From Thalia democratica (lineage: Eukaryota), in contig OZ241831.1 of assembly GCA_965202585.1 (NCBI GenBank), positions 31,248,001-31,312,000 on the forward strand: 64,000 nucleotides of DNA. The letters are read 5' to 3'. How positions within the stretch are numbered: position 1 is the stretch's first letter; every line of letters starts with the position of its first letter. Below the pieces are notes generated by a model. That model saw nothing but the letters and a program-made list of their open reading frames with translations, did not search any database and was not told the origin of the DNA. Below, piece after piece: positions 14,116 to 63,848 of this stretch. The position numbers and the translations under genes are program-made.

Positions 14116-14802
14116 ATGTTAACAAATGTACTAGAGCTTTTATGTTTCCTGTTTGGACGTGCATTACCGATTGTAACTATTGTTGCAATAATACACCTGA
14201 TAAAACATGTTCTGGTACCTGATGCACCGAAAAAGTCATTGTCGTCAGAATTCGTTACTTTAGAGGAATATGAAAAGTTACTACAAACCAAAGATAGAAG
14301 ACCTGTCGAAAAAGTACTGCAAACCAAAAATGTAAAACCTGCTGAAAAAGTAGATGATTTGACATCTAAAAAAATTAAAAAAGAATTGAAAGATCTTTCT
14401 TTACACCCTCTTACTAACATTAGTGCTCGATGTAAGGAAAATGATTTCTTTAAATGGAAAGCTGTAATTCAAGGACCTCAAGGAACTCCTTATGAAGGTG
14501 GAAAGTTTTTATTGCGTCTGAATTTACCCAAGGACTACCCATTTAAGCCACCAAAGGTTATTTTCAGAACAAAAATATACCATTGTAACATCAACGGTGA
14601 AGGGCGTGTAAGTTTAGACATTCTTGGTAGAAAATGGTCGCCGTGTTTGACTATAGAAAAGATTCTGTTGTCAATTCAGTCTATGTTTACCGACTGCGAC
14701 CCTGATGACTGTCTTGTGCCAGAAATAGCAGCTCAGTACGTCAACAATCGCGAAGAACACGACAGAATTTGCAGGGAATGGACAAAGAAGTACGCAACTT
14801 AA
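14116..14802 (+). CDS. Intronless UBE2D/E-like ubiquitin-conjugating-fold protein, active-site Cys replaced by Ser, with N-terminal hydrophobic extension (228 aa)
   Basis: E2 motifs W.AVIQGP.GTPYEGGKF.L...P.DYPFKPPKV.F.TKIYHCNIN..G.VSLDIL...WSP.LTI.K.LLSI; HCN and TDC.P as in UBE2E; codon AGT at 14611-14613 sits where Cys is expected; AAAATG start context; AATAAA at ~14901. Confidence 0.93.
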   Translation: MLTNVLELLCFLFGRALPIVTIVAIIHLIKHVLVPDAPKKSLSSEFVTLEEYEKLLQTKDRRPVEKVLQTKNVKPAEKVDDLTSKKIKKELKDLSLHPLTNISARCKENDFFKWKAVIQGPQGTPYEGGKFLLRLNLPKDYPFKPPKVIFRTKIYHCNINGEGRVSLDILGRKWSPCLTIEKILLSIQSMFTDCDPDDCLVPEIAAQYVNNREEHDRICREWTKKYAT

Positions 14803-27862: not shown

Positions 27863-30800
27863 TCAAATGTACATTTAAGGTAGCTTTAAAGTATCATTTT
27901 AACGTTGTTATAAAAAACATTTTTTTAGTTTGAAACTGAAAGTAGACCCAAAACGTGTAGTTTCAAAAACCTGCACAAAACTTCCCAAAATCAGTGGCAA
28001 TCTTAAAAATTAAACATAATTTATCTCTATTATTAAAAAAAATTCAAATTATAACTTAAATATTTTTAGGTTACAAAGATTAAAAATGCTTAAACTAATA
28101 GCAAGGTTGCCACACATAAGGGTACTCGGAATAACTCAAGACATTTTAAAAATCTAGAAATGTCAAGATGACTTTTTTTTTCAGGATGTTTAATTTATTT
28201 TTACCCGGATGATTCAGGAAAGTTCTTACTTTAATAAAAATCTTAGAATAGTTTAAAGATGTTATTTTTTTAAATATCAGGACAGATACCATCTAGAATG
28301 GGATTTAATTGATCCAGTTTCAATATTTTGTTGTTTTATATAACAAATTTTGTTTACGTATATAATTTTTATTGATTTAAAAATTAATATAATTATGTTT
28401 TAGCCATGGGAATACTTCTTCACTATTCATAGAAATAACAACTTAGTTTTTATTATTCTGAAATTAATATATATTATGATTTAAGTTAGTTCATGCAAGT
28501 GATTACTTTATGTTATAAAATTAAAGTTAGTCAATTAAAATTACAAAATAAAAATTCAAACAGTTTTCTACTCTATATAGAGTTAATTGACATAGTTGCA
28601 CAACATAATCAAAAATTTTTGTATTTAATTTTAATTGTTTTAAAACTTTAAACGTTAATGATTTGAAAACAGCTTTTAATAAAATGAGTAATTATCTAAT
28701 GCAAAAACATACACATGCAACCTTCAGGGTCAAAAAATTTGTAATTTATCAATTTAGACTAAAAAAACTAAAAAGACCTGAAATAGGAAATATTTAGAAA
28801 AAAACACCTGAAATTTCTAGCAAAATTCACTAAAATGGCTTAAAAAGCTGAAATTTAAACAGATTTTACATGTTAACTATTAAAATTTAAATTTTATCTT
28901 TAAATCTACAGTACAAATAAAAAAAATTTGTCATCATCAATTTTATTCATTAAAAAAACACACTAAAAATAACATTAAAGTATCTTTTCAAGGTTGATAT
29001 ACTAGTTTTTAACCTTAAACTCACCTAAAAACTAAAAATAGAACGGAAAAAGGAACCTTCCAGAAAAAATTGAAAAAACCTTGAAGAAAATTTTCAACAA
29101 AATTTGCAACCCTGATTCTTCTTTTTAATGATTAAGATAAAAAATAAACTTAAGGATTAAGTAGCTTGCGCCAGAGGAGAAATTTATTATAGAAGGACTT
29201 GTAAAAAATAACTCAGGATGATTTAGCACAATTTAAGGCAGGGAGAAAGCAGTGTAATATTTATTCAAGCGTGAAATTATTAACATGTAACAAACAAAAG
29301 TTTTATACGCTTTAGCACTTAATTGACATGAAAACTATTAGCATTTTACCAACTCTGGACTTCAAGGTCACTCAGAGACTAGAGAGTTTTTTTGAATCAA
29401 AGAGAAGCAAACATTTTACAGTAAAAGTTTGTTTATAACTGTTTTCTTAAATTAGAAAATTTAAGTTTAGAATAATTTATAAGATATGAACCAGTTAAAT
29501 TTAGTTATTCAGTAATTAGGAAACGTTTTTCTCATCATGATAAATTAAGATCAGGTGAATATTTGATTTTTGTTTAATTAATCTCAGATACGTTGTCTTA
29601 GAACAAAATTGTTAGTGTAAGTTAAAAAATATAAGTTATATTTACAAATACATTCAGTTTTATATAAATAAAGTAGATGCCTATCAATTAGTTGTAATAA
29701 ACCTTTTTTTTTTACTATTTTAAGAACGAGTTTAATGGCCAAAACTTATATATTTAATTGCTATACACTATTAACACTAAATTGAGCGAAAACAATAATT
29801 TGATACCTTTTGTAGGTTTTTTAAATAGTTTTTTTTTTAAATAACAAGTTCAAAAGTAAAGGTATGAAAAGTTTGTTAATTAACTTAACTAACTTTTACA
29901 TTTCATGAGCTGAACTTTTTGCTTGCTAAATTTTATAAAAGGAACAAAGTCGTAAATTAATTACGAAAAGGATATACATTTAAAAAGATAATTCAATTGT
30001 TAAATTAATTTAGTTTTTAGATAAAAATTATAGCTTAAATTTCAACAAAAATAAGTGGTCATTCAGTTTTTTATCAAACTTACAGCCAAAAAACCTGGAA
30101 ACCTGAATAACCTGAAACTTGACAATTTAGGCTAAAAAGCCTGGAAGATCTGGAATTTGAGAACTTCGAAAAAAATAACCTGGAATTTTGAACAAAAGTT
30201 ACTAAAAAACCTGGAATTTTAAACAATTTTCACATTTTTGATATTAATATTTCAATTGGACACAAAAAATATATCATAGAGATAAAAACTTTTATCGTTA
30301 TCAAATTTTTTTTATTAAGAAGCACATTTAAAGTAGCTTAACAGTATCTTTTTAATGTTTTTATATAGTGTAACACAGTTTTTTACTTTAAAATTTTTGT
30401 TTTAAACTAAGAAAAAACTCAACTTAATCTTTTCTAAACCTAAAGAAAATTTGCCACATACATCTGGCAACTCTGAATCTATTTGGTTAGTTTATGCAAT
30501 TTTGTAATTCAGTTTTTTTCTTAAACATTGTTTTTGACTGTCAATCAGTTTATCATTATTGCTTGAAAATCAATAAATTTAAATAATTACTCTTCTTTTA
30601 AAGTTAAGTATTTGCACAAACGAGGAATATATTTTTTCTAAAGAACAACTTAAGTAATCGATTTAAATGTTTCAAATTACAATTTCATTTATAACGTAGA
30701 TAGTTCATCTACTAGTCTGTGAATACAGTTCATTGTTTAAAAAGGCTCTTACTATTGTAGTTGAGGATGCAAATATTTCATAAACCATAAATTAAACAGC

Positions 30801-31419
30801 GTTGCTAAAAAAAACTGAAATTTGGTAATTTAGGCTAAAGTTACCTAGAAAGACATGAATATATTTTTGTTTAATTTGTAATTTCGAATAAAAATCACTA
30901 AAAATCTTTGAATTCTTAACAGTTTTTACAAGTATTAAGATTAATGTTCGACAAAAAAAATCTGTCGTATAGATAAATAAAACTTTGCCATCATCAATTT
31001 TTTTTTTTAAACACATTTAATCCATGTTAAAAAGAGATCTTTTCAAAAATTTCTATGCTATTTAACACACCTTAAACTAATTTTCAAACACAAAATAGAC
31101 CCAAAAGCGTGTAACTATGAAAAACTGGAAAATTTTTTGAATATTTGAAGCAAATTTGACAAAAAAAATTTGGCGACCCTTTCTAAACAAGCATCAACAC
31201 CATGCAGACGCTAATGGTGCATATTGATTGTGTCTGGATTTAATATTTTCTTGTATAGTTTAAGTTCAAAAAACATTAAAATATAAATAAGGTGGTGAGA
31301 TTTCCGGTTGAAACTGAAAATTGTAATAATGAACATTAGTAAAAAGTTTTAGTCTATCGAAAGTTTAATAACGAAAGGTATAAACAAACCTTGTTTTAAC
31401 TCGAGGTTGTTTCACGGCA

Positions 31420-31426
31420 TATAAAA
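31420..31426 (+). promoter_or_regulatory. Candidate TATA box of the second E2 gene
   Basis: TATAAAA in a locally GC-richer context (cacggcaTATAAAAgtccaggc), ~190 bp upstream of the ATG; weak evidence in so AT-rich a genome. Confidence 0.3.
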
Positions 31427-31617
31427 GTCCAGGCAAAGGCTTTGTGTTTTTTTCTTTATTTTTGTAGTTTATTTTAATTATACAGCAATATTAATTTGAT
31501 TTTATATACTATACTGAGTACAAAAACTCTACCAACTTTTTTTTCAAAAAAGAATATCATGAAAATTATCAGTATATACATAATGCAGCATTTGTTTAAA
31601 TATTGGTTTTGGTTATT

Positions 31618-32280
31618 ATGTCATCCAATCAAACAAACGAAATTGAAGACTATGTTAAGGAGTTAGATTTAAGGTGCTTTGAAGAAGTTTTTGGTACTGA
31701 AACTTGGAGCAATATTATCAATGCTCAGCGAAACGTATCGTCTTTGGATGCTTACAATAAGTCGGTACACTGCCAAAACTTCAAGATTGCTTCTGTAGAT
31801 GACAATGATCAGGAAACTACCGTTGCGAAACGAAGACTTCTAAAAGAGCTGAAAGAGATAAATATAAGCTCTCCAGCTTACATAAGCGCTTACTTAAAAG
31901 AAGACAACTTGTTAGAATGGGAAGCTTCGATTCAAGGACCTCTGAAATCTCCCTATGAAGGTGGAAAGTTTTTATTGAACCTAAAATTTTCTAAGGATTA
32001 TCCGTTTAAGCCACCAAAGGTTACTTTTAAGACCAAGATATACCACTGCAATATTAATAGCGACGGGTATATAAGCTTAGATCTTCTTGGTTCTAATTGG
32101 GCCCCTGCTATGTCTACAGAAAAACTTTTGTTGTCAATTCATTTGTTTTTTACCGACTGCAACCCTGTTGACTGTCTTGTGCCAGAAATAGCAGCTCAGT
32201 ACGTCAACAACCGCGAAGAACACGACAGAGTTTGCAGGGAATGGACAAAGAAGTACGCAACTGAAGAAGCTGAATTTTAG
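31618..32280 (+). CDS. Intronless UBE2D/E-like ubiquitin-conjugating-fold protein, active-site Cys replaced by Ser, with soluble N-terminal extension (~220 aa)
   Basis: RRLLKELKEI...WEASIQGP..SPYEGGKF.L..F..DYPFKPPKVTFKTKIYHCNINSDGYISLDLL; AGC at 32074-32076 in the Cys position; first ATG at 31618 (the ORF track starts at a TTG); 3' flank homologous to that of the 14116 gene through AATAAA. Confidence 0.92.
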   Translation: MSSNQTNEIEDYVKELDLRCFEEVFGTETWSNIINAQRNVSSLDAYNKSVHCQNFKIASVDDNDQETTVAKRRLLKELKEINISSPAYISAYLKEDNLLEWEASIQGPLKSPYEGGKFLLNLKFSKDYPFKPPKVTFKTKIYHCNINSDGYISLDLLGSNWAPAMSTEKLLLSIHLFFTDCNPVDCLVPEIAAQYVNNREEHDRVCREWTKKYATEEAEF

Positions 32281-33391
32281 TGACTTCATTGAATGAAGTA
32301 CTGTAATTTATTTGAACATTTGTAATTTATAATATGTTCCCAAGTTGAGTAGTACTTCGATAGAATAAACTTTAGATTAAATGTAAAACTGTTTCTATTT
32401 ATATGTGGGTAGTTGTATACAAGTTGCCTGAAATAAAGTACTTTAAGTTATAGATATAAGTTTTTTTTTTAAGTTTAAATTCATGCTTAAGTAACTTTGT
32501 GCAATATGCGTATACCCACAATGGTGATTATGATTAAAGTCCGTAGCTATGGACAATTCTTATACATAAATGTACACTGTAGAAATATTTTTTGTACATT
32601 CATGTATACAAAATAAAAAGTTATTAATATGTAAAAACTGATTTTTTTTTTACTTTTTGTTAATAAATTTTAGTTTAATGTATGCTAAAAGACAAGTTTA
32701 TATACTTGAATGATAAAATTTTAAAACAAAATCCTTAAACAAATTGCTCTGGTGAGTTACATGGTTCAAAATTTTGACTTAATATATGACGTAATATAAG
32801 AATTGAATTTGTGTAAATTTAAATGTTTCTTATCATTCGTGTTATTATTTGAAAACAGTTAACGGTAACTATTTGTTAAAGCTTAAGTTAGATGTCAAAA
32901 AACTGCGGCCCGCAATATCTAATTTATTTAAAAGCACACCTTTAGAAAAAAATTGTACTAAAACTAACAACTGGGCCTTAAGAAAAGTTAGAAATCTTAA
33001 ATTTTGTATTATTGCTTAATTTATAAGACTCGTGGTTTAAAAAAGTTCTTTTTATTGTTTTCTACAAATATTTCAAAAAAAAAATTGGTCAGTCAAGACA
33101 TTTTTAAACAGAGTAAAAATGCTTTTTCTAGGAAACTTGCAATTTATATAGCCTAGATAAATTGTAGTATTTATTCTAAAATGTATAAACTAGCCAAATA
33201 ATTTTATTTTCAATTAATTATATGCGTAAACTGTCGAGTTAGTTAGAAATCAAATAACAAGATTGATAATAAACTTTAATTTTCTGTTTTAATATTAGTT
33301 TTTAAAACATACATATTTTTAGATTCAAGCTAAACTACTTTAAATTTTAATAAATAAAATTTGCGTCTACTTTAATTACTTAAAAAAAAAT

Positions 33392-36063
33392 TTAAACAAA
33401 ACATAAATAGAAAAAAGGTGTAAGAATATATTTAATATATTAATTTGCCTAGAAAATTATACTTTTGTAGTTGATAAGAATAATAAAGCTTTTATAAACA
33501 AACAAAAACTCTTTTTAATTTTGTTTTGTATACATAAAACAAATACCTTATGAAAAGATGAATTAAAATAAAATTTACAAGCTAATATTTTTATAAATAA
33601 AGATGTTTATATTTTTAATATACGTAAATCAAGTAGTATAAAAAAATTCTAATTTGTTCAAAGAGTACATTAAGAAATTAAAACAGAACAACTTACAACT
33701 CAATAAAAACTTGGAAAAAACATATTTAAATTAAAATATACGTGTTCAATACCAAACAAAATGTTTAGAAACTAATTTGAACTCAAAATTAGGAAAAAAA
33801 TTAAAGCGTTGTAAGTTTTAACTAAGTATATTATATATAACTCATATTAAACTATAGTATGTGAAAGGAATTTAAAGCTTAACCAAAATTAATCTTGCAA
33901 ATTCTCAGCTTTATTTTTAAATGGCTAATAGGCATCTTAATTTATAAAAATTAATAATACTACACTAAATTGAAACGAAACTTAAAACTTTATTATTTGT
34001 CATCTGTTGTCGATAATTTCGATACTGTATGCTAAGGTTGAATATTGATTCGATATTCTAAAACAAATTACCAAAGACATTATTAACCACATTTTGGAAA
34101 CTTTTATTTGTTATATTAAACTTTCTAAATAAAGATTAACAACCGGTGATTCAAGATTAAATAGGTGTCTAGCTGCGACTTATCATCAACGATAGTTTCA
34201 CTTCTGTTTGGTCGTTGGAGTATTGGTTTAGACGTGAAATGGGTACGCTGAAACGTTTGTTAAATAATAATAAAGACACAGTTAACAAGGTTAAACAAAG
34301 CTAAACCTTACTGATCAGAAATGTTTTGAATATAGTTGAAACTACCATGTGTCGGTTCTGAGTCAAAACTAATTGAGAAAAAGATAGCTGACAAACCAAA
34401 GCTATTTTTCAGTAAATCCTAGGATTATTTTTACGTCTAAACCATTAATCCAACGATCAGGAAAAAACCCATTGTTAATAGAAGAAAAAAGTCTTGTAGT
34501 CTACTAGTTTAATAACAACTGTAAAAGTAGTTAAATTGGACAAACTTTGGGTCACCTAAAATGAATAATAGAGCATGTTCAAAAATGTATTATCTCAAAC
34601 ATCAGTGACAAAAAAGCTAAAAAACTGTAACAGTCGAAAATGCGATGAAAACATCAGCTATAGCTGAACATTTAGTAAACAATACTGGCTGTGGAAACAA
34701 ATTTGATTTTTCAAAATTTAGTATTACGAGTTAATGTTCAAATACTTTAGAGTCAATAAGACTAGACCCATTTTATACATTTGAATAAACCTTATTTATG
34801 CAAAAAGAAAAAAAACGTTATTATACTTGAGCCTTATTTAGTTAATAGCCGTTTTGTTTGAATTTCAATTTTACTTATAATATTACGCTTGAATTTAATT
34901 AATTGATGAACTAGTATGTTCTTTTAATATATATTGTTTATGTTTTGCTTTTTTTATTGTTTTAATTCTACTTTCTTACGAAAATTGATGAAATATTTTG
35001 GAAAAAAAAATAAAGTCATTTTTATTACTCGGAAAATTAAAAAAAAAGTTTTATGTTAAAATTATTAAAATAAAGTTTTTATCAATAAACAACAACTCTT
35101 TTTGTTTTCGTTTAAGAAACATTACACAAATACCTTATAAAATAATGTAATAAGAAAAATGTAATCTAATTTTTTTATGATTATAAACAGCTTTGGTTTT
35201 AATAAACATTACTTAAGTATTATAAGAAAATTTTAATTTAAAAAAAATATATATTATGATATTTAAGCAGAATAACTTATAATTCAATGGAAACTTGCAC
35301 AAAATTTAATTTAGATTAAAATATACATATCGAATTTAAACAAAATGTTAATAAACTAGTTTTAAACTAAAAATTAAGAAAAACATTGAAGGCGTTAATT
35401 GTTCTTAATAAAGCATATTAAATATTACTCAAAAAACTTATATGAATTGAAAGGAATTTAAAACATAGCTATAACTAAACTTACAACTACCACCCTTATT
35501 TTTTATATGGCTAATATGCATCTAAATTAAAAAAAAAAACACTACACTAAATTAAAAAAAACTAAAAACTATATTATTTTTTTCAAAAATTTTTTAGCAA
35601 TAATTTTGATACTTAATGCTTTGATTGATTATTGATTCAATATTTAAAAAAATCACCAAAGCTATTATTAACCATGTTTTCGAAAATTCGTTTTATTAAA
35701 CTCTTCAATTAAGACTTCAAAACCAGTGATTAAGTTTAAATTGAAAAATTAGACTATAAATAACTAGCTGTGACTTACCGTTAACGATAATTCCACTATT
35801 AATTATTTTATTAAACTATAATTTGATAGTACAAAGTTATTACTATTCAATACATATTTACTAAAAACAAGCTTTTTTTTTGTTGAACATTTTAGCTGTA
35901 GTTGCATTTTAAAATATTTATTAGTTAAAGTTTCTACATATGCTCAAAAAATAAACAAGTAAACCAGTTAATTCTTAATATTTATACTTTTAAGAGTTAA
36001 TTTTTTACGTAAAGTTAACGGAGTATATACATTTAAAAAATTTCATTTAAAACAGATTTAAAA
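33392..36063 (+). repeat. Tandem segmental duplication, unit 1 (~2.67 kb)
   Basis: Colinear with 36189-38859 throughout. Confidence 0.95.
34236..34845 (+). mobile_element. Penelope-like retroelement remnant (linker + GIY-YIG endonuclease), copy 1
   Basis: Decayed reading LKLPCVGSESKLIEKKI...VNPRIIFTSKP...KSLVVY*F...IGQT...SAIAEHL.NN..CGN.FDFSKF...KP.LCK, with stops and frameshifts. Confidence 0.8.
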
Positions 36064-38859: not shown

Positions 38860-39333
38860 TCGTATAATTAGATACGCTTCTTTTTTTAATTTGGTCTGTA
38901 AAAGTTTTAATTTACACTAAATTTTCTTAAAAATATCCTTTGCATTATCTGCACACATAACTTATTTTATTTTCCGTAACTAAACACTAGGTTTTTTAAA
39001 GAACAATATAAAAAAATTTTGAAAATTTGTTCATACATATAATTATATAAAAAATTGCTTTTAAATTTCGAAAATTTATAAACCAAAATTATATTAACAA
39101 ATGACCAATACATATATTTTATAAGTTCTTATACAATGATAAATGTAAAAGCGGCCAGCAGCTTATACTTTGAACAAAACATCAGACAAAATAAAAAATA
39201 AATCCAAGTTATAAATAAAATTCTCTAAGTTAGCTTTTAACTGTTGTCCAGATTCGAAGATCGTAGTTACAAGAAATCCTCCTCACTCAGAGTAAAAATT
39301 GGTAGCGGAAGTGGTTGCCTAGCAGCTTTTTAA

Positions 39334-41584
39334 TGCATAGCATTTCGTTGTGGACTAACATCTCGTTGTTGCATAGCAACTCGTTGTCGACTAACATCTC
39401 GTTGTTGCATAGCAGCTCGTTGTGGACTAACATCTCGTTGTTGCATAGCAACTCGTTGTTGACTAACATCTCGTTGTTGCATAGCAACTCGTTCTTGCAT
39501 AGCAACTCGTTGTTGACTAACATCTCGTTATTGCATAGCAACTCGTTGTTGACTAACATCTCGTTGTTGCATAGTAGCTTGTTGTAGACTAACATCTTGT
39601 TGTTGCATAGCAACTCGTTGTGGACTAACATCTCGTTGTTGCATAGCAGCTCGTTGTTGACTAACATCTAGTTGTTGCATAGTAACTCGTTGTTGACTAC
39701 TATCTTGTTGTTGCATAGCAACTCGTTCTTGCATAGCAACTCGTTGTTGACTAACATCTCGTTATTGCATAGCAACTCGTTGTTGACTAAAATCTCGTTG
39801 TTGCATAGTAGCTTGTTGTAGACTAACATCTCGTTGTTGCATAGCAACTTGTTGTTGACTAACATCTAGTTGTTGCATAGCAACTCGTTGTGGACTAACA
39901 TCTCGTTGTTGCATAGCAACTCGTTGTGGACTAACATCTCGTTGTTGCATAGCAACTCGTTGTTGACTAACATCTCGTTGTTGCATAGCAGCTCGTTGTT
40001 GACTAACATCTCGTTGTTGCATAGCAACTCGTTGTTGACTAACATCTAGTTGTTGCATAGCAGCTTGTTGTGGACTAACATCTCGTTGTTGCATAGCAGC
40101 TCGTTGTGGACTAACATCTCGTTGTTGCATAGCAACTCGTTGTGGACTAACATCTCGTTGTTGCATAGCAACTCGTTGTTGACTAACATCTCGTTGTTGC
40201 ATAGCAACTCGTTGTGGACTAACATCTCGTTGTTGCATAGCAACTCGTTGTTGACTAACATCTCGTTGTTGCATAGCAACTCGTTGTTGACTAACATCTC
40301 GTTGTTGCATAGCAGCTTGTTGTGGACTAATATCTTGTTGTTGCATAGCAACTCGTTGTGGACTAACATCTCGTTGTTGCATAGCAGCTCGTTGTGGACT
40401 AACATCTCGTTGTTGCATAGCAACTCGTTGTGGACTAACATCTCGTTGTTGCATAGCAACTCGTTGTTGACTAACATCTCGTTGTTGCATAGCAACTCGT
40501 TGTGGACTAACATTTTGTTGTTGCATAGCAACTCGTTGTTGACTAACATCTCGTTGTTGCATAGAAGCTTGTTGTTGACTAACATCTTGTTGTTGCATAG
40601 CAACTCGTTGTTGACTAACATCTCGTTGTTGCATAGCAGCTTGTTGTTGACTGAAATCTTGTTGTTGCATAGCAGCTTGTTGTGGACTAACATCTTGTTG
40701 TTGCATAGCAACTCGTTGTGGACTAACATCTCGTTGTTGCATAGCAGCTCGTTGTGGACTAACATCTCGTTGTTGCATAGCAACTCGTTGTGGACTAACA
40801 TCTCGTTGTTGCATAGCAACTCGTTGTTGACTAACATCTCGTTGTTGCATAGCAACTCGTTGTGGACTAACATCTTGTTGTTGCATAGCAACTCGTTGTT
40901 GACTAACATCTTGTTGTTGCATAGCAACTTGTTGTTGACTAACATCTTGTTGTTGCATAGCAACTTGTTGTGGACTAACACCTCGTTGTTGCATAGCAGT
41001 TTGTTGTTGACTAACATCTCGTTGTTGCATAGCAGCTTGTTGTTGACTAACATCTCGTTGTTGCATAGCAACTCGTTGTTGACTAACATCTCGTTGTTGC
41101 ATAGCAACTCGTTGTGGACTAACATCTCGTTGTTGCATAGCAACTCGTTGTTGACTAACATCTCGTTGTTGCATAGCAACTCGTTGTGGACTAACATCTT
41201 ATTGTTGCATAGCAACTCGTTGTGGACTAACATCTTGTTGTTGCATAGCAACTTGTTGTTGACTAACATCTAGTTGTTGCATAGCAACTCGTTGTGGACT
41301 AACATCTCGTTGTTGCATAGCAACTCGTTGTGGACTAACATCTCGTTGTTGCATAGCAACTCGTTGTTGACTAACATCTAGTTGTTGCATAGCAGCTCGT
41401 TGTGGACTAACATCTCGTTGTTGCATAGCAGCTTGTTGATGACTAACATCTCGTTGTTACATAGCAACTCGTTGTTAACTAACATCTCGTTGTTGCATAG
41501 CAGCTCGTTGTCGACTAACATCTCGTTGTTGCATAGCAACTCGTTGTGGACTAACATGTCGTTGTTGCATAGCAACTCGTTGTG
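39334..41584 (-). repeat. 36-bp minisatellite, ~62 copies, encoding MQQRDVS(P/Q)QRVA in its probable ancestral frame
   Basis: Unit gttgcatagcaactcgttgt(t/g)gactaacatctcgtt. The Gln frame is continuous with non-repetitive Gln/Thr-rich coding-like sequence upstream (41600-41850) and a unique tail (ARQPLPLPIFTLSEEDFL) downstream, but carries several CAA>TAA stops. Confidence 0.95.
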
Positions 41585-41662
41585 ATCCAGCAGCCTGTTC
41601 TTGGTCAGGAACTTGTACTTGCCTAATAGGATGTTGCAGATCAATCTCTAGCTGTGTTTTCG

Positions 41663-41962
41663 TCAACTGTGGTTGCATAGAATTTTTTGGTTCTCCAGTA
41701 GCTTGTTGTTGATCAGAAATTTTTGAATGTCTTGTACTTTCGGTTTGCCAAGAAATTTATAGTTGTCCAGTAGCTTGTTGTGGCCTAGAAATTTGTTGCT
41801 GCGAAGTAGTTTCGGATTTCCTAGAAATTTGTGGTTGACCAGTAGCTTGTTGTTTATTTGTGATTTTTCAGATTTTTTCATCTGCACAGTAGCATTTTGG
41901 AGTTGTCGTTGTTTTTTAGGTTTTTCTCGTCTGACTTTTGCTCTTCGGCTCCAAAACCAATT
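41663..41962 (-). CDS. Divergent homeobox gene, 3' exon (helix 3 NWFWSRRAKVRRE plus tail)
   Basis: Acceptor actttag|AAT TGG TTT TGG AGC CGA AGA GCA AAA; the W-F-x-x-R-R-A-K homeodomain signature; frame ends at TGA 41663-41665. Confidence 0.78.
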   Translation of the reverse strand, partial: NWFWSRRAKVRREKPKKQRQLQNATVQMKKSEKSQINNKLLVNHKFLGNPKLLRSNKFLGHNKLLDNYKFLGKPKVQDIQKFLINNKLLENQKILCNHS

Positions 41963-42157
41963 CTAAAGTTTTAATAATTAAAAAATAAAGCCATTTATTT
42001 TAAATATATGTTTTATAAAAGTCTAGATCTATGCCAATATTTTGTAACATCTATTCTATTTGATAATTAAGGTGCTAAATTTCTTTTAAAATTGCTGTAT
42101 ACAGTCATAGAGGCTTTTAAAAGTCTAAAAGTTACTAGTATACAGTCAATATCTAAC

Positions 42158-42382
42158 CGCTACACATCTCAAAGGCAGACGAATTTGATTTGCAATACGC
42201 TTTCTATTTTCTAAATCCGGATTCTTATTAATCAAGAATACACCTTTAAAAAAACCCCTCTGAAAATCATACAAACACTGATCCGGGGATAAAATTTTTG
42301 CGCCGGGCTGGTACCTTAAGGAGGCTCTGATATCGTTTGGCGACACTGAAGTCAATAATACTGGTTTATTACTCCTCATCAT
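42158..42382 (-). CDS. Divergent homeobox gene, exon with helices 1-2
   Basis: ...FFKGVFLINKNPDLENRKRIANQIRLPLRCVA|gttaga aligns with homeodomain positions ~16-46 (F20, P26, R31, A35, L40, V45); a 195-bp phase-0 GT-AG intron (41963-42157) joins it in frame to NWF. Confidence 0.75.
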
Positions 42383-42673
42383 AACTTAATTTGTTTTAGC
42401 ATGGCAAAAGCACACCTTTCTCAGTAAATAAAATAGATTTGTTTTTATTATTAGTTATTAAGTGTAACAAAATTAAGAACACAACGGCAGCTATGAAGCC
42501 TAAGTATAAGTAATGCCAAAAATAAGAGTTTTTTTTATAAGTTTATTAAAAATAAAATTAAATATTATAATAAGATTTAATTTAAAAACATTTAAAATTC
42601 TTCTTTCTTATGAAAATATTTATTTTGAAACATTATTTTTTGTTGTGGTTTCTAATCCAGTTAATTAAACAAA

Positions 42674-42876
42674 CCAGTAATTGGATAATTCGAATTTTGA
42701 GAAATAAAATGGTCCGGATTTAGATTTGGACGTTGTTGTCCAACAAAGTCGGGTGAAGTTATACCAGCCGAAGCGTAACCATGTAGGTGACTGCTGTTGC
42801 TAGGAGGAATTTGTTGTTGCCAGGATGCTGGAACTAAAGGAGCCTGGTGAAAGTTAGGAGAGCCTGTTTGAGGCAT
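42674..42876 (-). CDS. Gln/Pro/Ser-rich exon, probable upstream exon of the homeobox gene
   Basis: MPQTGSPNFHQAPLVPASWQQQIPPS... with AAAATG context and a coding-like GC rise. Possible phase-1 donor ACTG|gtttgt would join in frame to aag|TT ATG ATG at 42384, but that acceptor is weak. Confidence 0.45.
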
Positions 42877-44544
42877 TTTATTGAACCCTCTGTTTGGAAT
42901 TAATCAAAGTTTTTATTATAAAGTTTGTGTTTTGAATTAAAACTTATAAAAAATAAATCATGCATTATTATTTTTATAATTATTTCAACATAATGTTGTA
43001 TCAGAATTGCTTATAAAGAATAGTATTAAATTAAAAAAAAATCTGCTAAAATAATAAAAAACTTTTAATAAAAAGTTAACATATAATATAAGCTTTCACA
43101 AGACCAACCCTTGCGGTAGGAAAGCTTCCTCTGCGTCGGGGATCAACCTGAAAACCAGGACTTCTAGTTTGTAGCCTGTGAGGAGGGAAAGAGAGCGGGG
43201 GACTTCCCGGAAATAACTTTCTTTAATTTGGGGAATTTACCTGTTGTGGAAACCTTGGATTTGATTAAAACTAAATTTTACATTAAGAAAAAAGAACAGA
43301 ATTAAACGTTTGTAGTTAACTTGTGCTTCCTTAAATTAAGCGAAATTTAAAAATATTTTAAATTGAAAAAATAAAAAGAACAGTTGAACTCCTACATAAT
43401 CCGTTAATAGATGTTTAAAGACTAACATCACATTAAAATGTTTCCTTAATAAGTAATACTAACATATTTTTCAACAAAAAAACTTTTGTTAAGAGTGTTA
43501 ACGAATACAGCTCTATCGAAATCTACAAACTTTTAGTTTTTAGTGATTAAACATTAATGATTTTTATGTATTATCTTTTTAACTATTATTTCCAATTCAG
43601 TAAAGCGTCTTTTTATACAATTTTTGTTTAATACAACCTGCATAAACAATAAATTTATCGAAAAAGTTTATTTTGTTTATTGCGTTTCTAAAGCTTAGTG
43701 TAAATATGTTCATATTATTGATATTTTTAAACTTCTTTGTATCATCAAGAATAACATTCATCTTTTCAATATATTCAGTTGTATTTAATAAAACTTTTCA
43801 ATTTCCTTTGTCCATCTAAGACATTCCATGCTTTTATTTTGTGATAAATGTTTCAGTGTTCTGTGCACAGCTTTATTTTTTAGTTCTTATTTGTTCAGTT
43901 ACGTCATAAGATAATGTTTTGTTTTCATTTTTAGTAATTTGTTTAATTTTAGATTAAATTAAGCCATAATATTAATTTCATCTATGGTTTTTGGAAAAAT
44001 AGAATGCTTGAAGCCAACGTTAATGCATTTGATTCACTAATTGAAATTCATGATTACTGTTGTTTATGATACAGTTTCGAGTTTAACTTTTACTTTGGTC
44101 GTTCCACAATGAATCTAATTTCTTTTTATGTCACTGCTTTTTATCCAATATTATTTCTTTTAAGTAAATAGTTCTACCTTAAAAAAACAAGCGAATTATA
44201 GTTTATTTTTATTGTTACAATAAATATACGTGAAAAAGCGAATTCAAAATATAATAAGTTATAATTTAATTATTATTTTATCTGTTACATAATACAGTGT
44301 CAATATACTAAAGTTATAATTACACTTTATTCTTTAAAAACATAACTATAAATTATGTTTTAATACTTTATCAATATATATCTTATACTACATGTTTTTG
44401 AAAGTAACAAAAACATTTAAATAAATAAAGATATGATAATACGCTACCACATATATAATCTTCATACACTTTATTTATACATTTATAACCTTCTTACTGA
44501 CAAATCAGTGAGTTCTGAATTTACATTTTTAGTTTATAGGATCT

Positions 44545-45143
44545 TTAATGTCTGTTCCTGCTTGAATTCTGCGTAAATCTTCTTCCACAAACATCACATC
44601 CAAATGGTCTATCTCCAGTATGAATTCTATTATGAGTATTTAGGTTACTTTTGTGAAAACTTCTTTTTGCAAATATCACATTCAAAAGGCTTTTCTTTAT
44701 TAAGAGTCAACATGTGGCGTTTCAGATGATGATTTAGAGCAAACATCTTTTCGCAGACTTCACATTGAAAATCTTTCTTACCACTATGTGTCAACATGTG
44801 TCTTGTCAAGTCAGCTTTACGATTAAAACTTTTATCACACTGTTCGCAACTAAACGGTTTATTACCAGTATGTACTACTGCATGGCGTGTTAAATTACTT
44901 CTTCGCGAAAAACATCTTTTGCAAACATCACATTGATAAATCTTCAAATCGGAATGAGTAAGTTGATGTTGTGTCAATCTGATTTTCTGTACAAAACTTT
45001 TATCATTTGAAAGGTTTCTCACCAGAATTAATTCTTTGATGGCATTCCAGAATATATTTTTTCCTAAAACTTTTTCCACAAGTTTCACAAATATGTTGCC
45101 TATCATCATTTAGAAGCTTCAAACTAGATTCAGCAAAATTCAT
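44545..45143 (-). pseudogene. Intronless C2H2 zinc-finger pseudogene (~7 fingers)
   Basis: C-x2-C...H-x3-H fingers with TGEKPF-type linkers spread over three frames: MNFAESS...HICETCGKSF...KPFK (frameshift); DKSFVQK...KKFSQK (frameshift); [21 protein letters not shown]...RH*. Two fingers lack the second His. Confidence 0.85.
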
Positions 45144-47109: not shown

Positions 47110-50100
47110 TGAGCATGCTTAGATGTTTTAGCGACTCGTGTTTTTTGTCCGTCGATGAAAATTCTACTTTTTGCAGGCACTCTTCTTTGCAAATGGTTCA
47201 GCAAGTTCTTCGAATCGCCGACCAGATTGTCAAAACTTATCACGTGATCGTAGTTGATTTGGCACGGCGAACACAAATCGACCATGTTTCTCCAATGAAC
47301 GTCTGCCTTCAAGTGGCCTTCGCCGTATTGACCTGAAACGATCCTGTGAAAAACATTCAAATGTCAAAGTTTTCAACGTGTAAATATAAAATATCTACGC
47401 TATCACATAGGCGAATGAAGTTATATTTGAATACAGTAACAAGACTAGTTGAATTTTTTGAACTACATCACTTTATTTACTTGATTAACAGTTTCTTTTA
47501 CAACTGATTTATAGTTTTTTTTTTAAACAAAACGTTGTATTCTTTAAAACAATCTGTAAAAAAAAATCGTCTCCTTACATGTACATAAGTTAAGAACTTT
47601 ATATTGTTAAATTTTAAGCAACTTACAATATCAAAAATGTTATATAAATAAAAAAATTCAATTTTATATCAATTGTTTGAAGTATAAGTCTGGAACGTTT
47701 TTAAAACGATTTACTTTTGTAGCTTAAACTGTAGTGGTTACTTTATAAATACTTCAAAGGAAAGTTGTCCTTTTCTTAACATGTTTACTGAATCCAAAAC
47801 TTCTTTTTGCTGAATAGACTTCAAGTTTTGAAATATTTTTGTTCCATTTAATTTGTTTTCAAAATTATTTTGATTGAAGTTTCTGTTAGAAGATTATAAA
47901 GCTCTTTAAAGAAATTTTACCCAAGTATTATAATAACAAAATTGCTAAAAAACTTATTAAAACACAGCAAATTTTTGATTTAGTATAAATGACTGCATTC
48001 TTTAGAATTTACTAAGCTTTAAGTTTGCTAATAAAAATATGTTTAAAATCAGAATCACTAACTAATCTAGTAACAAACTTGTCGTTATATTTTAAGTGAG
48101 GTTATAAAAAAATCTTTTAGACAGAGACTTTTAATCTTAAAATTTAGCTTGAATAAAAACTTAATAAAAGCACACTGAAATATAAGTATGGAAAAACAAA
48201 CTGCATATAAGTATGTTTAGATTAAATATTATAAAACTTAATAAATTTTTACATATAAAAGTCTAATTTCTTCAAATCTAACATGTTACTTGTTAACCAT
48301 GCTCTATATCAGGGTTTTCCAAACTTATTTTCACAAGCCCCCATTTAAAAAATAAAAATCCATGACAAGATTATTATGAAAACTACCATTAAATGAATCT
48401 AAAAACTTTTTTTTTGCACTTTATCATCAACTCAAAAATATTTAGTGCAGCAATTCATAACCTGGGATAAATCTACTTCTTAGGGTAATTTTTATTTCAA
48501 GGCTTAAAATTTCTTTATTATAATTGATTTGAGTTAAAGTTTATGAATTTTTATTAGTTAGTATTCAACTGTTTTTTTTTTTTTTGAAGATAAACAAACT
48601 CTTTAATTTTTACGAATTTTTGTGTTTCATGAGCCTAAAATTTAAATAAATTTAGTTTTTTTCCTCAAACTTAATCACTATTTTAGGTATTGGGGGTAGT
48701 TAGAAAAACACCTTCCATAAAAGGGTAAAACATGAAAAAAAGGACAAGAACCGCTAATCTAGTGTGAGAACTCGTAGATTAATTAACTGTAAACTTCAAT
48801 TTATGGCCTCATGGCCCTCTTTCGGCCCATTTCATTAACAACAACCCGCTCCCATTAGCCCCTTTGCTGCTTATGGCCCTAAAATGGCCGCATGGCTTGC
48901 TTTAGTAAACCCTGTTCTATGTTATTAGAAATCGTATATTAATAAAAAAGTTTTAGATTCTTCATCTTAATTTGACAACAACCCTTTATTTTGACTATTA
49001 CAGTTTTGAAGCTCAGAAGGTTTATTAAAACCATTGTATTTTAATTGACTTAAAAAAAATGGTCTGTAACATTTTTGAATACAAACTAATTTTTCAGTAA
49101 AAACAATAATTTGTTTTGTTTATGAAGTGTTATAAGGTTTTTTGTTATAATAAATAAAAGTGCATTATAGTATGAGTATAAAAGTATGAATATAAAAATT
49201 TAACCAACGGTTTTTAATTAACTTATTGTTTAAACCATATGCACAGCACAGATGTCTGATTATATAAATATTAATAGAAATTGCATTTAAAGTTCATATA
49301 TTCAAACATGTTTCTTGGTCAAGAACAACATTTTCATCATAAACTATTTCGTTCACCTGATCCTAACTCCGTGGACTAGCTGTGGCAAATACTTGTTGGC
49401 TGAAGGCTTGCCCACATAGTTTCTGTAATAAACTTTGGATGCTTTATTTGTGAACTTTGAATAATAAGCCGACACAAGCCTTTCAAAAGGATGTCGTTGG
49501 ACAAAAAACTTGGTGTAGTTTGTTAATCTTTGCTCCCTCTCTTCTTTGCTCAATGTCCTTAACAACCGGAATGTCTTATCATTATCAGTTAAAATATCCT
49601 CCCTCCTAGCCGTCTTATAATCAGGTTTACCAGCGAAATGCCACAAAAACCTTCTCCAGGTCGTGCTTGCCGCCTTAAAAAAAAATACTTATTTAACTTT
49701 CGGTTACACTAATGTGTGGTTTTTTTAGAGTTAGACTACGTAAATGAGCTTTATGAAAGAAGTTAAGTTCAAGTATTAAAAACAATCACAAGTTTATAAC
49801 ACAATGAGTTAATTAAAACATTTTTTATGTCTTTATTTTCATAGAAACAACATTGAATTTAGTTTTTTTTCAGCAGTTTAGCGTAAATTTATTAACGCAA
49901 AGAAAAGAAGAACATTTACTTTAGAGTTAAAAAGTTGATTGTTTAAAAGGAATTTATCACAACTAACATGTATTAGTTGAACTTTTTATAATAGATTTTT
50001 TTGGTGATGATTATAAACAAATCCCAATTAAAATTAAAATCTACAACTTTCGACTTCACGAATGTATAAAATAAAATGTAAACAATTAAATTTTTTGTTA

Positions 50101-55300: not shown

Positions 55301-56059
55301 TTATAACAGTGCAGTTGTAACAAGTGCAGTTGTAACAAATGCAGTTGTAACAAAAGAATCATTGCTCAAAATTTTTGATAAAGGTAATAAAGTTGTTATG
55401 TTTACAGATGTGTTAATAAAGGCTGAATCAGACTCAGTAGTTGTAATAAAAGAACCATTTCTCAAACTTTTAAAAGAAGACAATAAAGCTGTTGTGTCTA
55501 CAAATGCCTGTATCGAAGCTACTTCAGACTTGTAAGTTGTAAGAGAATCATCATTAGTGGAAGACAGTGAAGTTGATGCTTTTATTTTACTAGAAACTGA
55601 TAACTTGGTTAAGAATGTCATTGATGTTTTAGTCATGTTGTTTTCTGACTTTTTACATAAAAATATCATTCTATAACCACACTTTATTTTATAAACAGGT
55701 TTCATTTCCATCGTGTCTACAATCACTTCGTAACAGCTATCATTCTCATCATTCCCGTAAACTTCTATTTCCCCACTGGATATTTCATCATACTTTTCCC
55801 CATCAGCCCACTGCCCAGACCAAGTTCCATTTTCATTCAAGAATTTCAAGCCTATGCGCATAAAACCTCCAAACTGATGAGAGTACTGTAGGACATTACC
55901 AACAACCTCACCTTGCTTGATTTCTATCTTTGCGAGCTGATAGTTTTGATTTTTGCAAAACTCAACAGACTCATCGAAATTCAAATCTTTGTAGACAAAC
56001 AGAAATTCGCCGCACTTTACACGTCCTATGTTGTCCATGTAAACGGTTTTACAACTCAT
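55301..56059 (-). CDS. C-type-lectin-like domain + Ser/Thr stalk protein, truncated before the TM helix (252 aa)
   Basis: Close paralog of 62553-63848 (LNFDESVEFC...RIGL...W.GQWADG...SCY...KC...FLCKK). Diverges at FVTTA, which is triplicated (15-bp unit) just before TAA. Functional status unknown. Confidence 0.75.
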   Translation of the reverse strand: MSCKTVYMDNIGRVKCGEFLFVYKDLNFDESVEFCKNQNYQLAKIEIKQGEVVGNVLQYSHQFGGFMRIGLKFLNENGTWSGQWADGEKYDEISSGEIEVYGNDENDSCYEVIVDTMEMKPVYKIKCGYRMIFLCKKSENNMTKTSMTFLTKLSVSSKIKASTSLSSTNDDSLTTYKSEVASIQAFVDTTALLSSFKSLRNGSFITTTESDSAFINTSVNITTLLPLSKILSNDSFVTTAFVTTALVTTALL

Positions 56060-62552: not shown

Positions 62553-63848
62553 TTATTCATTAGTGTCAACATCACGCGTAATTATGACGTAATTTTTAGC
62601 AACATCACACGAAATAGGTGGTGAGGCTAAAAGATTTTCTAACTTCAAGTCTGCACGATTCAAACTTGCATCTGTTGTGACGTCATTTGTTGTCGATATG
62701 ACGTCATCATGAGTTGGACAAAACCGAGTAATGACGTTGTTGTGACAAGGGTTACACGAAATTGGAAGCAAAACGTCGATTTTGTGTTCTGTGTTTTTCA
62801 CGCTTGCAGCTGTTGTGACGTCATTCCTAGTGAGGTTGTTATCCGTTGGTATGAGGTCATAAAACTCAGTTTCAACTGGTGAGAATCGGATTGTAGACAT
62901 TTCATTATTTTTTTTATTCTTGTTTCGTTTTCTTCGTTTCTTACTTTTGATGTAATAAGCAAGTAAAAGGAGCAAAGTAACAAAAACTAAACACGTTGCA
63001 AAGCTTATCCCAAACAATAATTTTTTATTGTTATAAAAACTACGTTTATATGCATCAGTGTTTAAAAAACTACCTGGGTTTGAAGTTGTTCTCTTTGTAA
63101 ATTTCTTAGAAAATTCTTCATCATACTCTGCAGTTGTAACAAATGAATCATTTCTCAAAGTTTTAGATAAAGGTAATAAAGTTGTGGTGTTTACAGATGT
63201 GTTAATAAAGGCTGAATCAGACTCAGTAGTGGTAGTGAAATAGCTATTTGTTAAGCTTTTAGAAGAAGACAATAAAGCTGTTGTGTCTACAGATGGCTGT
63301 ATAGAAGCTATATCAGACTTGTAAGTTGTAAGAGAATCATCATTAGTGGAAGACAGTGAATTTGTTGCTTTTACTTTAGTAAAAGCTGATAACTTGGTTA
63401 AGAATGTCATTGATTTTATGGTCACATTGTTTTCTGACTTTTTACATAAAAAAATCATTTTATAACCACACTTTATTTTATAAACAGGTTTCATTTCCAT
63501 CGTGTCTACAATCACTTCGTAACAGCTATCATTTTCATCATTCCCGTAAACTTCTATTTCCCCACTGGATATTTCATCATACTTTTCCCCGTCAGCCCAC
63601 TGCCCAGACCAAATTCCATTTTTATTGAAGAATTTCAAACCTATACGCATAAAACCTCCAGTTTGATATGTGTACTGTAGGACTTCACCAACAACCTCAC
63701 CTTGATTGATTTTTACCTTTGCGAGTTGATAGTTTTGATTTTTGCAAAACTCAACAGACTCATCGAAATTCAAATCTTTGTAGACAAACAGAAATTCGCC
63801 GCACTTTACACGTCCTATGTTGTCCATGTAAACCGTTTTACAAATCAT
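62553..63848 (-). CDS. Single-pass membrane protein: C-type-lectin-like domain, mucin-like S/T stalk, TM helix, cytoplasmic tail (431 aa)
   Basis: CTLD cysteine / WIGL-like pattern; S/T-rich stalk with several N-x-S/T sequons; TM LLFGISFATCLVFVTLLLLLAYYI followed by KSKKRRKR; tail with YDLI and YVII. No signal peptide in frame. Confidence 0.85.
   Translation of the reverse strand: MICKTVYMDNIGRVKCGEFLFVYKDLNFDESVEFCKNQNYQLAKVKINQGEVVGEVLQYTYQTGGFMRIGLKFFNKNGIWSGQWADGEKYDEISSGEIEVYGNDENDSCYEVIVDTMEMKPVYKIKCGYKMIFLCKKSENNVTIKSMTFLTKLSAFTKVKATNSLSSTNDDSLTTYKSDIASIQPSVDTTALLSSSKSLTNSYFTTTTESDSAFINTSVNTTTLLPLSKTLRNDSFVTTAEYDEEFSKKFTKRTTSNPGSFLNTDAYKRSFYNNKKLLFGISFATCLVFVTLLLLLAYYIKSKKRRKRNKNKKNNEMSTIRFSPVETEFYDLIPTDNNLTRNDVTTAASVKNTEHKIDVLLPISCNPCHNNVITRFCPTHDDVISTTNDVTTDASLNRADLKLENLLASPPISCDVAKNYVIITRDVDTNE

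Follow-up and report, generated by a model that had tools for sequence, protein, structure and literature searches.

A divergent two-exon homeobox lies on the minus strand of a 64,000-nt window of Thalia democratica (contig OZ241831.1, positions 31,248,001–31,312,000). The window is the whole stretch of DNA that was analysed, and positions given without a contig name refer to it. The window lies on contig C7 of the 801.8 Mb genome that was searched, and the locus, the C7 copy, is most probably (about 70%) a young unprocessed pseudogene or truncated relic that belongs to a large homeobox family clustered on contig C4. The anatomy of the locus, its family, a 7-bp deletion and the pattern of substitution were observed directly, and from these we infer that the copy is non-functional.

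The original prediction had proposed a hidden homeobox spliced at 42158/41962, with a phase-0 intron between homeodomain residues 46 and 47 and with Trp and Ser at positions 50 and 51, and each of these points is borne out by the DNA. Exon 1 consists of exactly 75 codons ending at Ala46, and the minus-strand intron has GT-AG boundaries in phase 0. The donor (GCG/GTTAGA, the slash marking the junction) stands at the end of the minus-strand ORF (open reading frame) 42382–42158. The 3′ end of the intron reads …AACTTTAG (TTTAG), and exon 2 starts at 41962 with the codons AAT TGG TTT TGG AGC CGA AGA, corresponding to N47 W48 F49 W50 S51 R52 R53, so that Trp50 is read from TGG at 41951–41953 and Ser51 from AGC at 41948–41950. 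The spliced joint peptide is …LPLRCVA/NWFWSRRAKVRREK…, and the same junction is repeated in paralogs. In homeodomain numbering exon 1 contributes I1 L S P D5 Q C L8 Y D F Q12 R G F F16 K G V F20 … V45 A46.

The homeodomain was examined using the Pfam profile PF00046, which has a gathering score of 22.9 bits. Exon 1 alone scored 16.3 bits (E 0.009, profile positions 11–44), below the cut-off, whereas the spliced 67-residue peptide scored 37.4 bits (E 2.2e-9, profile positions 11–57), a gain of 21 bits from splicing exon 2 on. This comparison and a structure prediction had been suggested as checks on the original prediction, and both came out in its favour. Its proposed insertion of about seven residues in helix 1, after SPDQ, was not found: the Pfam alignment places 47 residues on 47 profile positions without a gap, the paralogs also align without gaps, and the helices of the AlphaFold model agree. 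The earlier reading had anchored Q12 on the Gln of SPDQ, while the paralog sequences …RFDDFQRGVLEREF… and …RFDDFQRGVLEREFLMNQNP… place the true Q12 at the Gln of DFQRG.

The structure was predicted with AlphaFold from a 43-row alignment of the spliced peptide with homeodomain units from metagenomic multi-homeodomain proteins. The model gave a mean pLDDT (predicted local distance difference test) score of 85.1 with helices at homeodomain residues 10–22, 28–38 and 42–59, the three-helix fold with canonical 60-residue spacing. When the model was compared with the PDB using Foldseek, all 50 of the top 50 matches were homeodomains, with a root-mean-square deviation of 0.5–1.2 Å over approximately 51 residues and with PHOX2B, CRX, ALX4, goosecoid (GSC) and LMX1A leading, a result that leans on an alignment whose rows were themselves homeodomains. 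Prediction from the single sequence gave a two-helix hairpin with no fold match in the PDB, and was set aside as a poor model rather than as evidence. A phmmer search of the PDB gave Lhx9, of the LIM class, as the top match at 28 bits, followed by ceh-37/Otx, DUX4, OTX2, CRX and GSC at 25–27 bits.

Judged by its sequence and predicted fold, the locus is a true, very divergent, lineage-specific homeodomain with an intron at 46/47. An intron at this position is found in many PRD-class homeodomains (Holland et al., 2007; PMC2211742). Most of the nearest neighbours in sequence and structure belong to the PRD class, but they include the LIM-class Lhx9 (in the sequence list) and LMX1A (in the fold list), and residue 50, which is S, K or Q in the PRD class, is Trp in the C7 copy. 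No PAIRED domain was identified with Pfam in exon 1, exon 2 or the ORF upstream, so the gene would be PRD-like at most, and not PAX. The C7 copy carries one homeodomain rather than the two of the DUX type. The hallmark residues W48, F49, R52 and R53 are kept. Asn51 is replaced by Ser and position 5 is Asp, within an N-terminal arm, I-L-S-P-D-Q-C, that contains no basic residue at all. The C7 copy keeps the fold signature but not the DNA-contact signature. Homeodomain specificity is determined mainly by positions 47, 50 and 54, and Asn51 is strongly conserved (Chu et al., 2012; PMC3460184), and altered DNA binding by a homeodomain with Trp50 and Ser51 would be plausible from established knowledge.

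The solitary gene implied by the original prediction proved to be a dispersed member of a cluster with at least 40 copies. A six-frame search of the genome with exon 1 gave 32 matches, and a profile built from ten exon-1 peptides gave 43 family matches, with 41 on C4, one on the unplaced contig C1678 and one on C7 (the locus itself, at 131 bits); two further weak profile matches, on C9 and C6, were other homeoboxes. The C4 matches span 30.86–32.36 Mb and give at least 41 exon-1 copies, mostly on the minus strand, a few of the 41 matches being second pieces of one exon. Alignment of exon 1 with nine paralogs gave 36–71% identity to the C7 copy over 75 residues. An AG acceptor lies directly before codon 47 in every copy with a findable exon 2, and because the same position recurs in over 25 paralogs the 46/47 splice is not a product of chance. 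The family intron is usually about 180–200 nt long, although some second-homeodomain copies (a few) have introns of up to about 320 nt.

Full-length members of the family have four parts. The N-terminal motif, M-x-x-S-x-K-L-V-x-L-T-T-G-S-P-N-N-I-R-A-S-L-x-Y-Q-P, is followed directly by the homeodomain and is present in the C7 copy. The Q-rich repeats share an exon with helix 3, the open frame of which is about 100–190 codons, and the protein ends in a short acidic motif with the consensus …RQPLxRPxxTxSE(E/D)(D/N)(F/Y)x-stop, seen for example as …ARQPLRRPNITQSEENYS-stop (…PNITQSEENYS-stop), …PNVTQSEDDFS-stop and …PILNVTDEDFF-stop. In five paralogs (loci L007, L014, L024, L026 and L030) the reading frame stays open across the repeats and reaches the C-terminal motif, which is intact in two of three copies at L026; L035 ends in a degraded …TLTAKDFL-stop. 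L026 (G000:C4:32017700-32025700) consists of three complete gene copies arranged head-to-tail with a 2,226-bp period, with identical exon 1 sequences and nearly identical introns, which suggests that a tandem triplication took place very recently. Three other loci, L012, L013 and L015, encode a tandem pair of homeodomains, both of which are interrupted at 46/47.

The closest relatives of the C7 copy are L002, L003 and L005 on C4, and comparison with these revealed the damage to its second exon. The 7-bp deletion lies directly after KKSE-K-SQ, 30 codons past the homeodomain, and the seven base pairs are present in all three relatives. Because of this deletion the helix-3 frame leaves the Q-rich frame and reads 62 codons (…NNKLLVNHKFLG…) to a TGA stop at 41663–41665, so that the in-frame Q-rich repeats and C-terminal motif that mark the family tail are both missing. 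The abandoned frame contains stops, and one Q-rich tail repeat has undergone a copy-specific expansion into a long tandem array (92% matches), which is absent from the closest paralog L002, where its flanks are contiguous.

The substitution pattern is close to neutral. Identity to the three relatives is 0.86–0.89 in exon 1, 0.83–0.87 in the flanks and 0.78–0.86 in the intron. When changes in exon 1 alone were polarised using L004, L006 and L008 as outgroups, the C7 branch had 9 nonsynonymous and 2 synonymous changes, and pairwise omega was 0.71–0.94 overall and 0.63–0.93 in the homeodomain. All three relatives are broken: in exon 1, L002 carries two stops and L005 a frameshift, the W48 codon of L002 has become a stop, the tail of L003 contains a stop, and L003 and L005 both lack the ATG. 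Trp50 is common to the four copies. Residue 51 is Asn (AAC) in L002 and L005 and His in L003, and Ser51 is private to the C7 copy through a single A-to-G change, AAC to AGC. The neutral-like substitution, the frameshifted and stop-ridden tail, the dead sister copies and the private Ser51 are what was expected of a gene in early decay, one of the two outcomes suggested by the original prediction, and on the same evidence its alternative of a specialised homeodomain fits far worse. Trp50 and Ser51 are therefore more probably marks of decay than of a new DNA-binding code.

The homology to L002, L003 and L005 spans the exons, the intron and the flanks, extending in pieces from approximately 43,264 down to approximately 33.7 kb, and because the intron is retained the C7 copy is a segmental DNA duplicate and not a retrocopy. 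The flank at 29000–33500, which contains an E2-like gene, matches dozens of places in the same C4 interval, these typically lying roughly 10 kb away from a copy of the homeobox. The window contains E2-like paralogs (UQ_con) at 31603–32280 and 14116–14802, from a family with dozens of copies in the C4 interval. The homeobox and the E2-like gene appear to have been amplified together as one array unit, a piece of which would have been transposed into the C7 window, since the E2-like flank matches the C4 cluster. The similarity of the coordinates C7:31.290 Mb and C4:31.287 Mb raised the possibility of homeologs or haplotypes. This was rejected, as outside the unit the flanking sequence has matches scattered over many parts of C4, without collinearity. 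An ORF upstream of the locus, 42661–42876 on the minus strand, was also rejected as a 5′ coding exon, as it gave no Pfam hit, is interrupted by a 4-nt indel (insertion or deletion) in L005 and has only flank-level identity. Its 71 codons are non-conserved and its ATG sits in an insertion unique to the C7 copy. It contains a WQQQIPP stretch resembling the IPWQQQ tail repeats of the family, and may be a relic of the tail of a neighbouring array copy.

The history that best fits these observations would begin with the copying of a DNA segment of at least 10 kb, probably including the neighbouring E2-like gene, from the C4 tandem cluster to C7. After transposition the copy would have drifted without detectable selection, retaining its ATG, both splice sites and an open homeodomain. 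The 7-bp deletion would have severed the homeodomain from the Q-rich repeats and the conserved C-terminal motif, and the old frame would then have gathered stops and the runaway expansion of a 36-bp repeat. The DNA-reading residues would also have been damaged, leaving no basic arm, Trp at position 50 and Ser in place of Asn51. If transcribed, the locus is predicted to give a protein of 174 residues in which a crippled homeodomain stands between the N-terminal motif and 62 residues read out of frame.

Several observations weigh against decay as the explanation. The ATG, the donor, the acceptor and a run of 108 codons covering the homeodomain and basic linker remain intact, and the C7 copy is the sole member of its subfamily to have kept the ATG; this intactness is mild evidence for some constraint or function. 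In simulated drift the chance of acquiring no stop without selection was 0.2–0.4, with indels ignored. The substitution counts are small, with only 11 polarised changes, and an omega near 1 can be compatible with positive selection too. A homeodomain-only product could still act, as does HOPX, the homeodomain of which does not bind DNA.

It is possible, if unlikely, that the locus is a functional remodelled gene whose truncated product would be a non-binding or weakly DNA-binding modulator, for example one that competes with full-length members for partners in the manner of HOPX. Such a role would fit a copy that, unlike its three sisters, has an undamaged start codon, splice sites and homeodomain ORF, that keeps the fold residues L16 (here F), F20, W48, F49, R52 and R53, and for which AlphaFold predicts a confident fold. 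Yet exon 1 and the homeodomain are no more conserved than the intron and flanks, and nonsynonymous polymorphism is present in helix 1. The alternative tail frame is also read by L006 on C1678, for 240 codons, but it is open only because the repeat unit is stop-free in that frame. No transcript or protein has been recorded, and none of the indexed sequencing runs containing the stretch is recorded as RNA.

The recognition helix varies widely within the family. Residues 48–53 of helix 3 read WFRNRR in at least nine copies, WFQNRR in L030 and L038, WFKNRR and WFQDRR in the double-homeodomain genes, WFRERR in L006, L007, L008 and L035, WFYYRR or WFIHRR in L015 and L041, WFHYQI in L009, L011 and L029, WFTNQR in L037, and WFW(N/S/H)RR in the four-copy subfamily of the C7 copy, L002, L003 and L005. 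Residue 50 in the paralogs is R, Q, K, Y, I, H or T, with Arg50 in most of the family. Variability was ranked over 24 distinct stop-free homeodomains, a set that includes copies broken elsewhere and one doubtful pairing of first homeodomain and helix 3, in L010. F20, P26, I38 and W48 were invariant, with L16, N23, V45 and F49 nearly so, and among the 60 positions position 50 ranked 3rd, 47 4th, 54 8th and N51 15th. Because the set includes copies broken elsewhere, the variable pattern at 47, 50 and 54 is a lead toward diversifying selection and not proof. The WFRNRR subfamily shows constraint, with an omega of 0.26–0.44 in informative pairs and exon divergence 2–9 times below intron divergence; the stronger statement that this ‘RWFRNRR subfamily’ is certainly live was softened, since the ancestral start codon does not share a frame with the remainder of exon 1. 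The C4 cluster is a paired-like homeobox family subject to birth and death, in which copies that look intact stand beside broken ones.

That the C7 copy is a working transcription factor, with a new specificity conferred by Trp50 and Ser51 as part of an adaptive diversification of the recognition helix, is very improbable. Every other Trp50 copy in the family is a pseudogene, Ser51 is confined to a neutrally evolving copy, the arm has no basic minor-groove residue, and the activation-type tail is gone together with the C-terminal motif. The high ranking of positions 50, 47 and 54 alongside a conserved structural core would favour adaptive change, as positions 47, 50 and 54 set homeodomain specificity (PMC3460184), but the variability table takes in decayed copies; the occurrence of Trp50 in units of unrelated multi-homeodomain proteins, such as the metagenomic protein P0001, is a further point in favour of this reading. 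A chance open frame or assembly artefact with no homeobox ancestry, which the AT-rich context of the window (GC approximately 24%) might suggest by making short ORFs and GT/AG dinucleotides common, is refuted by the Pfam E value, by dozens of paralogs with the same exon structure and by independent contigs that reproduce the sequence.

Three indexed runs contain the stretch, and over 41600–43300 all of these behave as genomic contigs, none of which connects 42158 directly with 41962. Run X1 contains an 850-nt contig over 41955–42804, covering exon 1, the intron and the start of exon 2 with one difference, and a 98-nt contig over 41883–41980, covering codons 47–60 with no differences. One X1 contig skips 126 bp (41732–41857), which suggests a length polymorphism in the degenerate repeat zone. 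Sample S2, which comprises runs X2 and X3 and has a different organism label from X1, contains a 280-nt contig over 42028–42312 with three differences in exon 1, all nonsynonymous: K46N is present in both runs, and G43V and Y38D in the X2 contig only. The same sample has no substitutions in 130 nt of intron, with one 5-nt indel. Two further S2 contigs, about 95% identical to exon 2, carry the 7 bp, each with an extra 1-nt indel, and are either alleles or extra copies.

When the spliced peptide was compared with a word-indexed protein collection, no entry had as many as three 5-residue words in common with it. Only 42 of 1.84 billion representative proteins matched at E<=0.001 in an exhaustive profile search, consistent with the lineage-specific homeodomain of the original prediction. 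The close matches are short ORFs on ENA marine-metagenome contigs. P0002, P0005 and P0006 were traced to Tara Oceans contigs (PRJEB4352), where the intron position is conserved, since their ORFs read through the same donor site. The intronless metagenomic proteins P0001 (1666 residues; L023, ENA contig k119_2290662), P0008, P0013 and P0015 contain 8–17 homeodomains per ORF, with many units lacking Asn51 and two having Trp50 (RQWFWQHRY and NQWLWRERW). No description of the homeobox family of the C4 cluster was found in the literature.

Features of the homeobox locus and of its remnants on the minus strand of the window
Feature	Position	Strand	Description	Basis
Upstream part of duplicated unit	42383–43264	−	83–87% identical to flanks of L002, L003, L005	
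Exon 1	42158–42382	−	75 codons, ATG start; 29-residue N-terminal family motif (MMRSNKPVLLTSVSPNDIRASLRYQPGAK), then homeodomain residues 1–46 (42295–42158)	ORF, sequence, alignment to nine paralogs
Intron	41963–42157	−	195 nt, GT...AG, phase 0, splits homeodomain residues 46/47	Sequence; position conserved in family
Exon 2, homeodomain residues 47–60	41921–41962	−	NWFWSRRAKVRREK	Sequence; Pfam gain on splicing
Exon 2, remainder	41663–41920	−	Basic linker, then 62 codons in wrong frame of ancestral Q-rich repeat (…INNKLLVNHKFLG…)	
7-bp deletion	41854–41855	−	Relative to L002, L003, L005	DNA alignment
TAA stop in ancestral Q-rich frame	41757–41759	−	CAA in L005	
Tandem array, 36 bp x 62.5	39334–41583	−	MQQRDVSQQRVA units in old frame, 7 stops	TRF
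C-terminal motif relic	39267–39296	−	…FTLSEEDFL-stop, unreachable from homeodomain frame	

Other features of the window were recorded. A C2H2 zinc-finger ORF (zf-H2C2_2, 99 bits) at 44645–45109 on the minus strand lies just upstream of the homeobox unit, and its DNA has at least 40 matches on C4 between 4 and 11 Mb, which makes it a member of a large zinc-finger family. The minus strand also has C-type lectin domain ORFs at 55301–56059 and 62553–63848 and a sulfotransferase-family exon at 49353–49646. A first look at the whole genome gave 870 candidates for the Pfam Homeodomain. Several other arrays are made up of near-identical copies, among them those at C6:69.83–70.22 Mb and C4:36.18–36.71 Mb (all at 60.3 bits, spaced approximately 20–60 kb apart), and there are long open frames with several homeodomains at C7:50.9–51.8 Mb. 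The mitochondrial COX1 gene (L047, G000:C1833:8315-9631) has AGA or AGG at universally conserved Gly (RRRDPVLFQHLF for GGGDP…) and TGA at Trp, which is the ascidian/tunicate mitochondrial code (AGR = Gly, TGA = Trp) and marks the genome as that of a tunicate. The closest COX1 proteins are marine eukaryote catalogue sequences at 92% and 88%, with all others at approximately 50%. Stop-ridden COX1 fragments at G000:C4:56.84–56.94 Mb and on C757 look like nuclear mitochondrial insertions.

The C7 locus illustrates that a homeobox can hide from ORF-based annotation behind an intron in helix 3, and it offers a dated snapshot of decay in which the arm, Asn51 and the tail are lost and the fold signature survives. 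The C4 family matters more than this single locus, being a large cluster with an architecture of its own and variable recognition-helix positions.

Lineage-specific PRD-class expansions are known chiefly from mammals, in which they function at embryonic genome activation, and, given expression data, an expansion in the sister group of the vertebrates would let the generality of the mammalian pattern be tested. The eutherian ETCHbox genes (ARGFX, LEUTX, DPRX and TPRX) and the Obox/Rhox genes of rodents are lineage-specific, tandemly duplicated and fast-evolving PRD-class clusters with many pseudogenes (PMC8208926). The C4 family shares with these the 46/47 intron (PMC2211742), tandem birth and death, dispersed and dead copies and restriction to one lineage, and shares with ARGFX the Arg50 found in most of its members. 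In contrast, the C4 family belongs to a tunicate and not a mammal, shows no orthology to CRX-derived genes, has an N-terminal LTTGSPNNIRASLRYQP motif, Q-rich 12-residue repeats and an acidic C-terminal motif, and forms an array interleaved with E2-like genes.

The double-homeodomain loci L012, L013 and L015 resemble DUX genes such as DUXA and DUXB, which have an intron per homeobox. DUX4 is among the best PDB sequence matches, yet its match is weak (25.6 bits) and no better than those of OTX2, ceh-37 and Lhx9, and the C7 copy, unlike DUX, contains only one homeodomain. An independent internal duplication is the simplest explanation of the paired homeodomains. A bolder proposal would make the cluster a tunicate counterpart of Dux/Obox/ETCHbox, with at least 40 PRD-like copies, including double-homeodomain and Asn51-less members, whose fold is conserved while diversifying selection pushes positions 47, 50, 51 and 54 apart, and with the Trp50/Ser51 copy on C7 as a live, truncated, homeodomain-only regulator; taken as a whole this is doubtful. 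The nearest single-gene parallel is HOPX, with which the C7 product shares a short, divergent homeodomain, a PRD-type intron and compromised DNA-contact residues (PMC2211742), but HOPX is ancient, conserved and under selection, whereas the C7 locus is a young duplicate without visible constraint.

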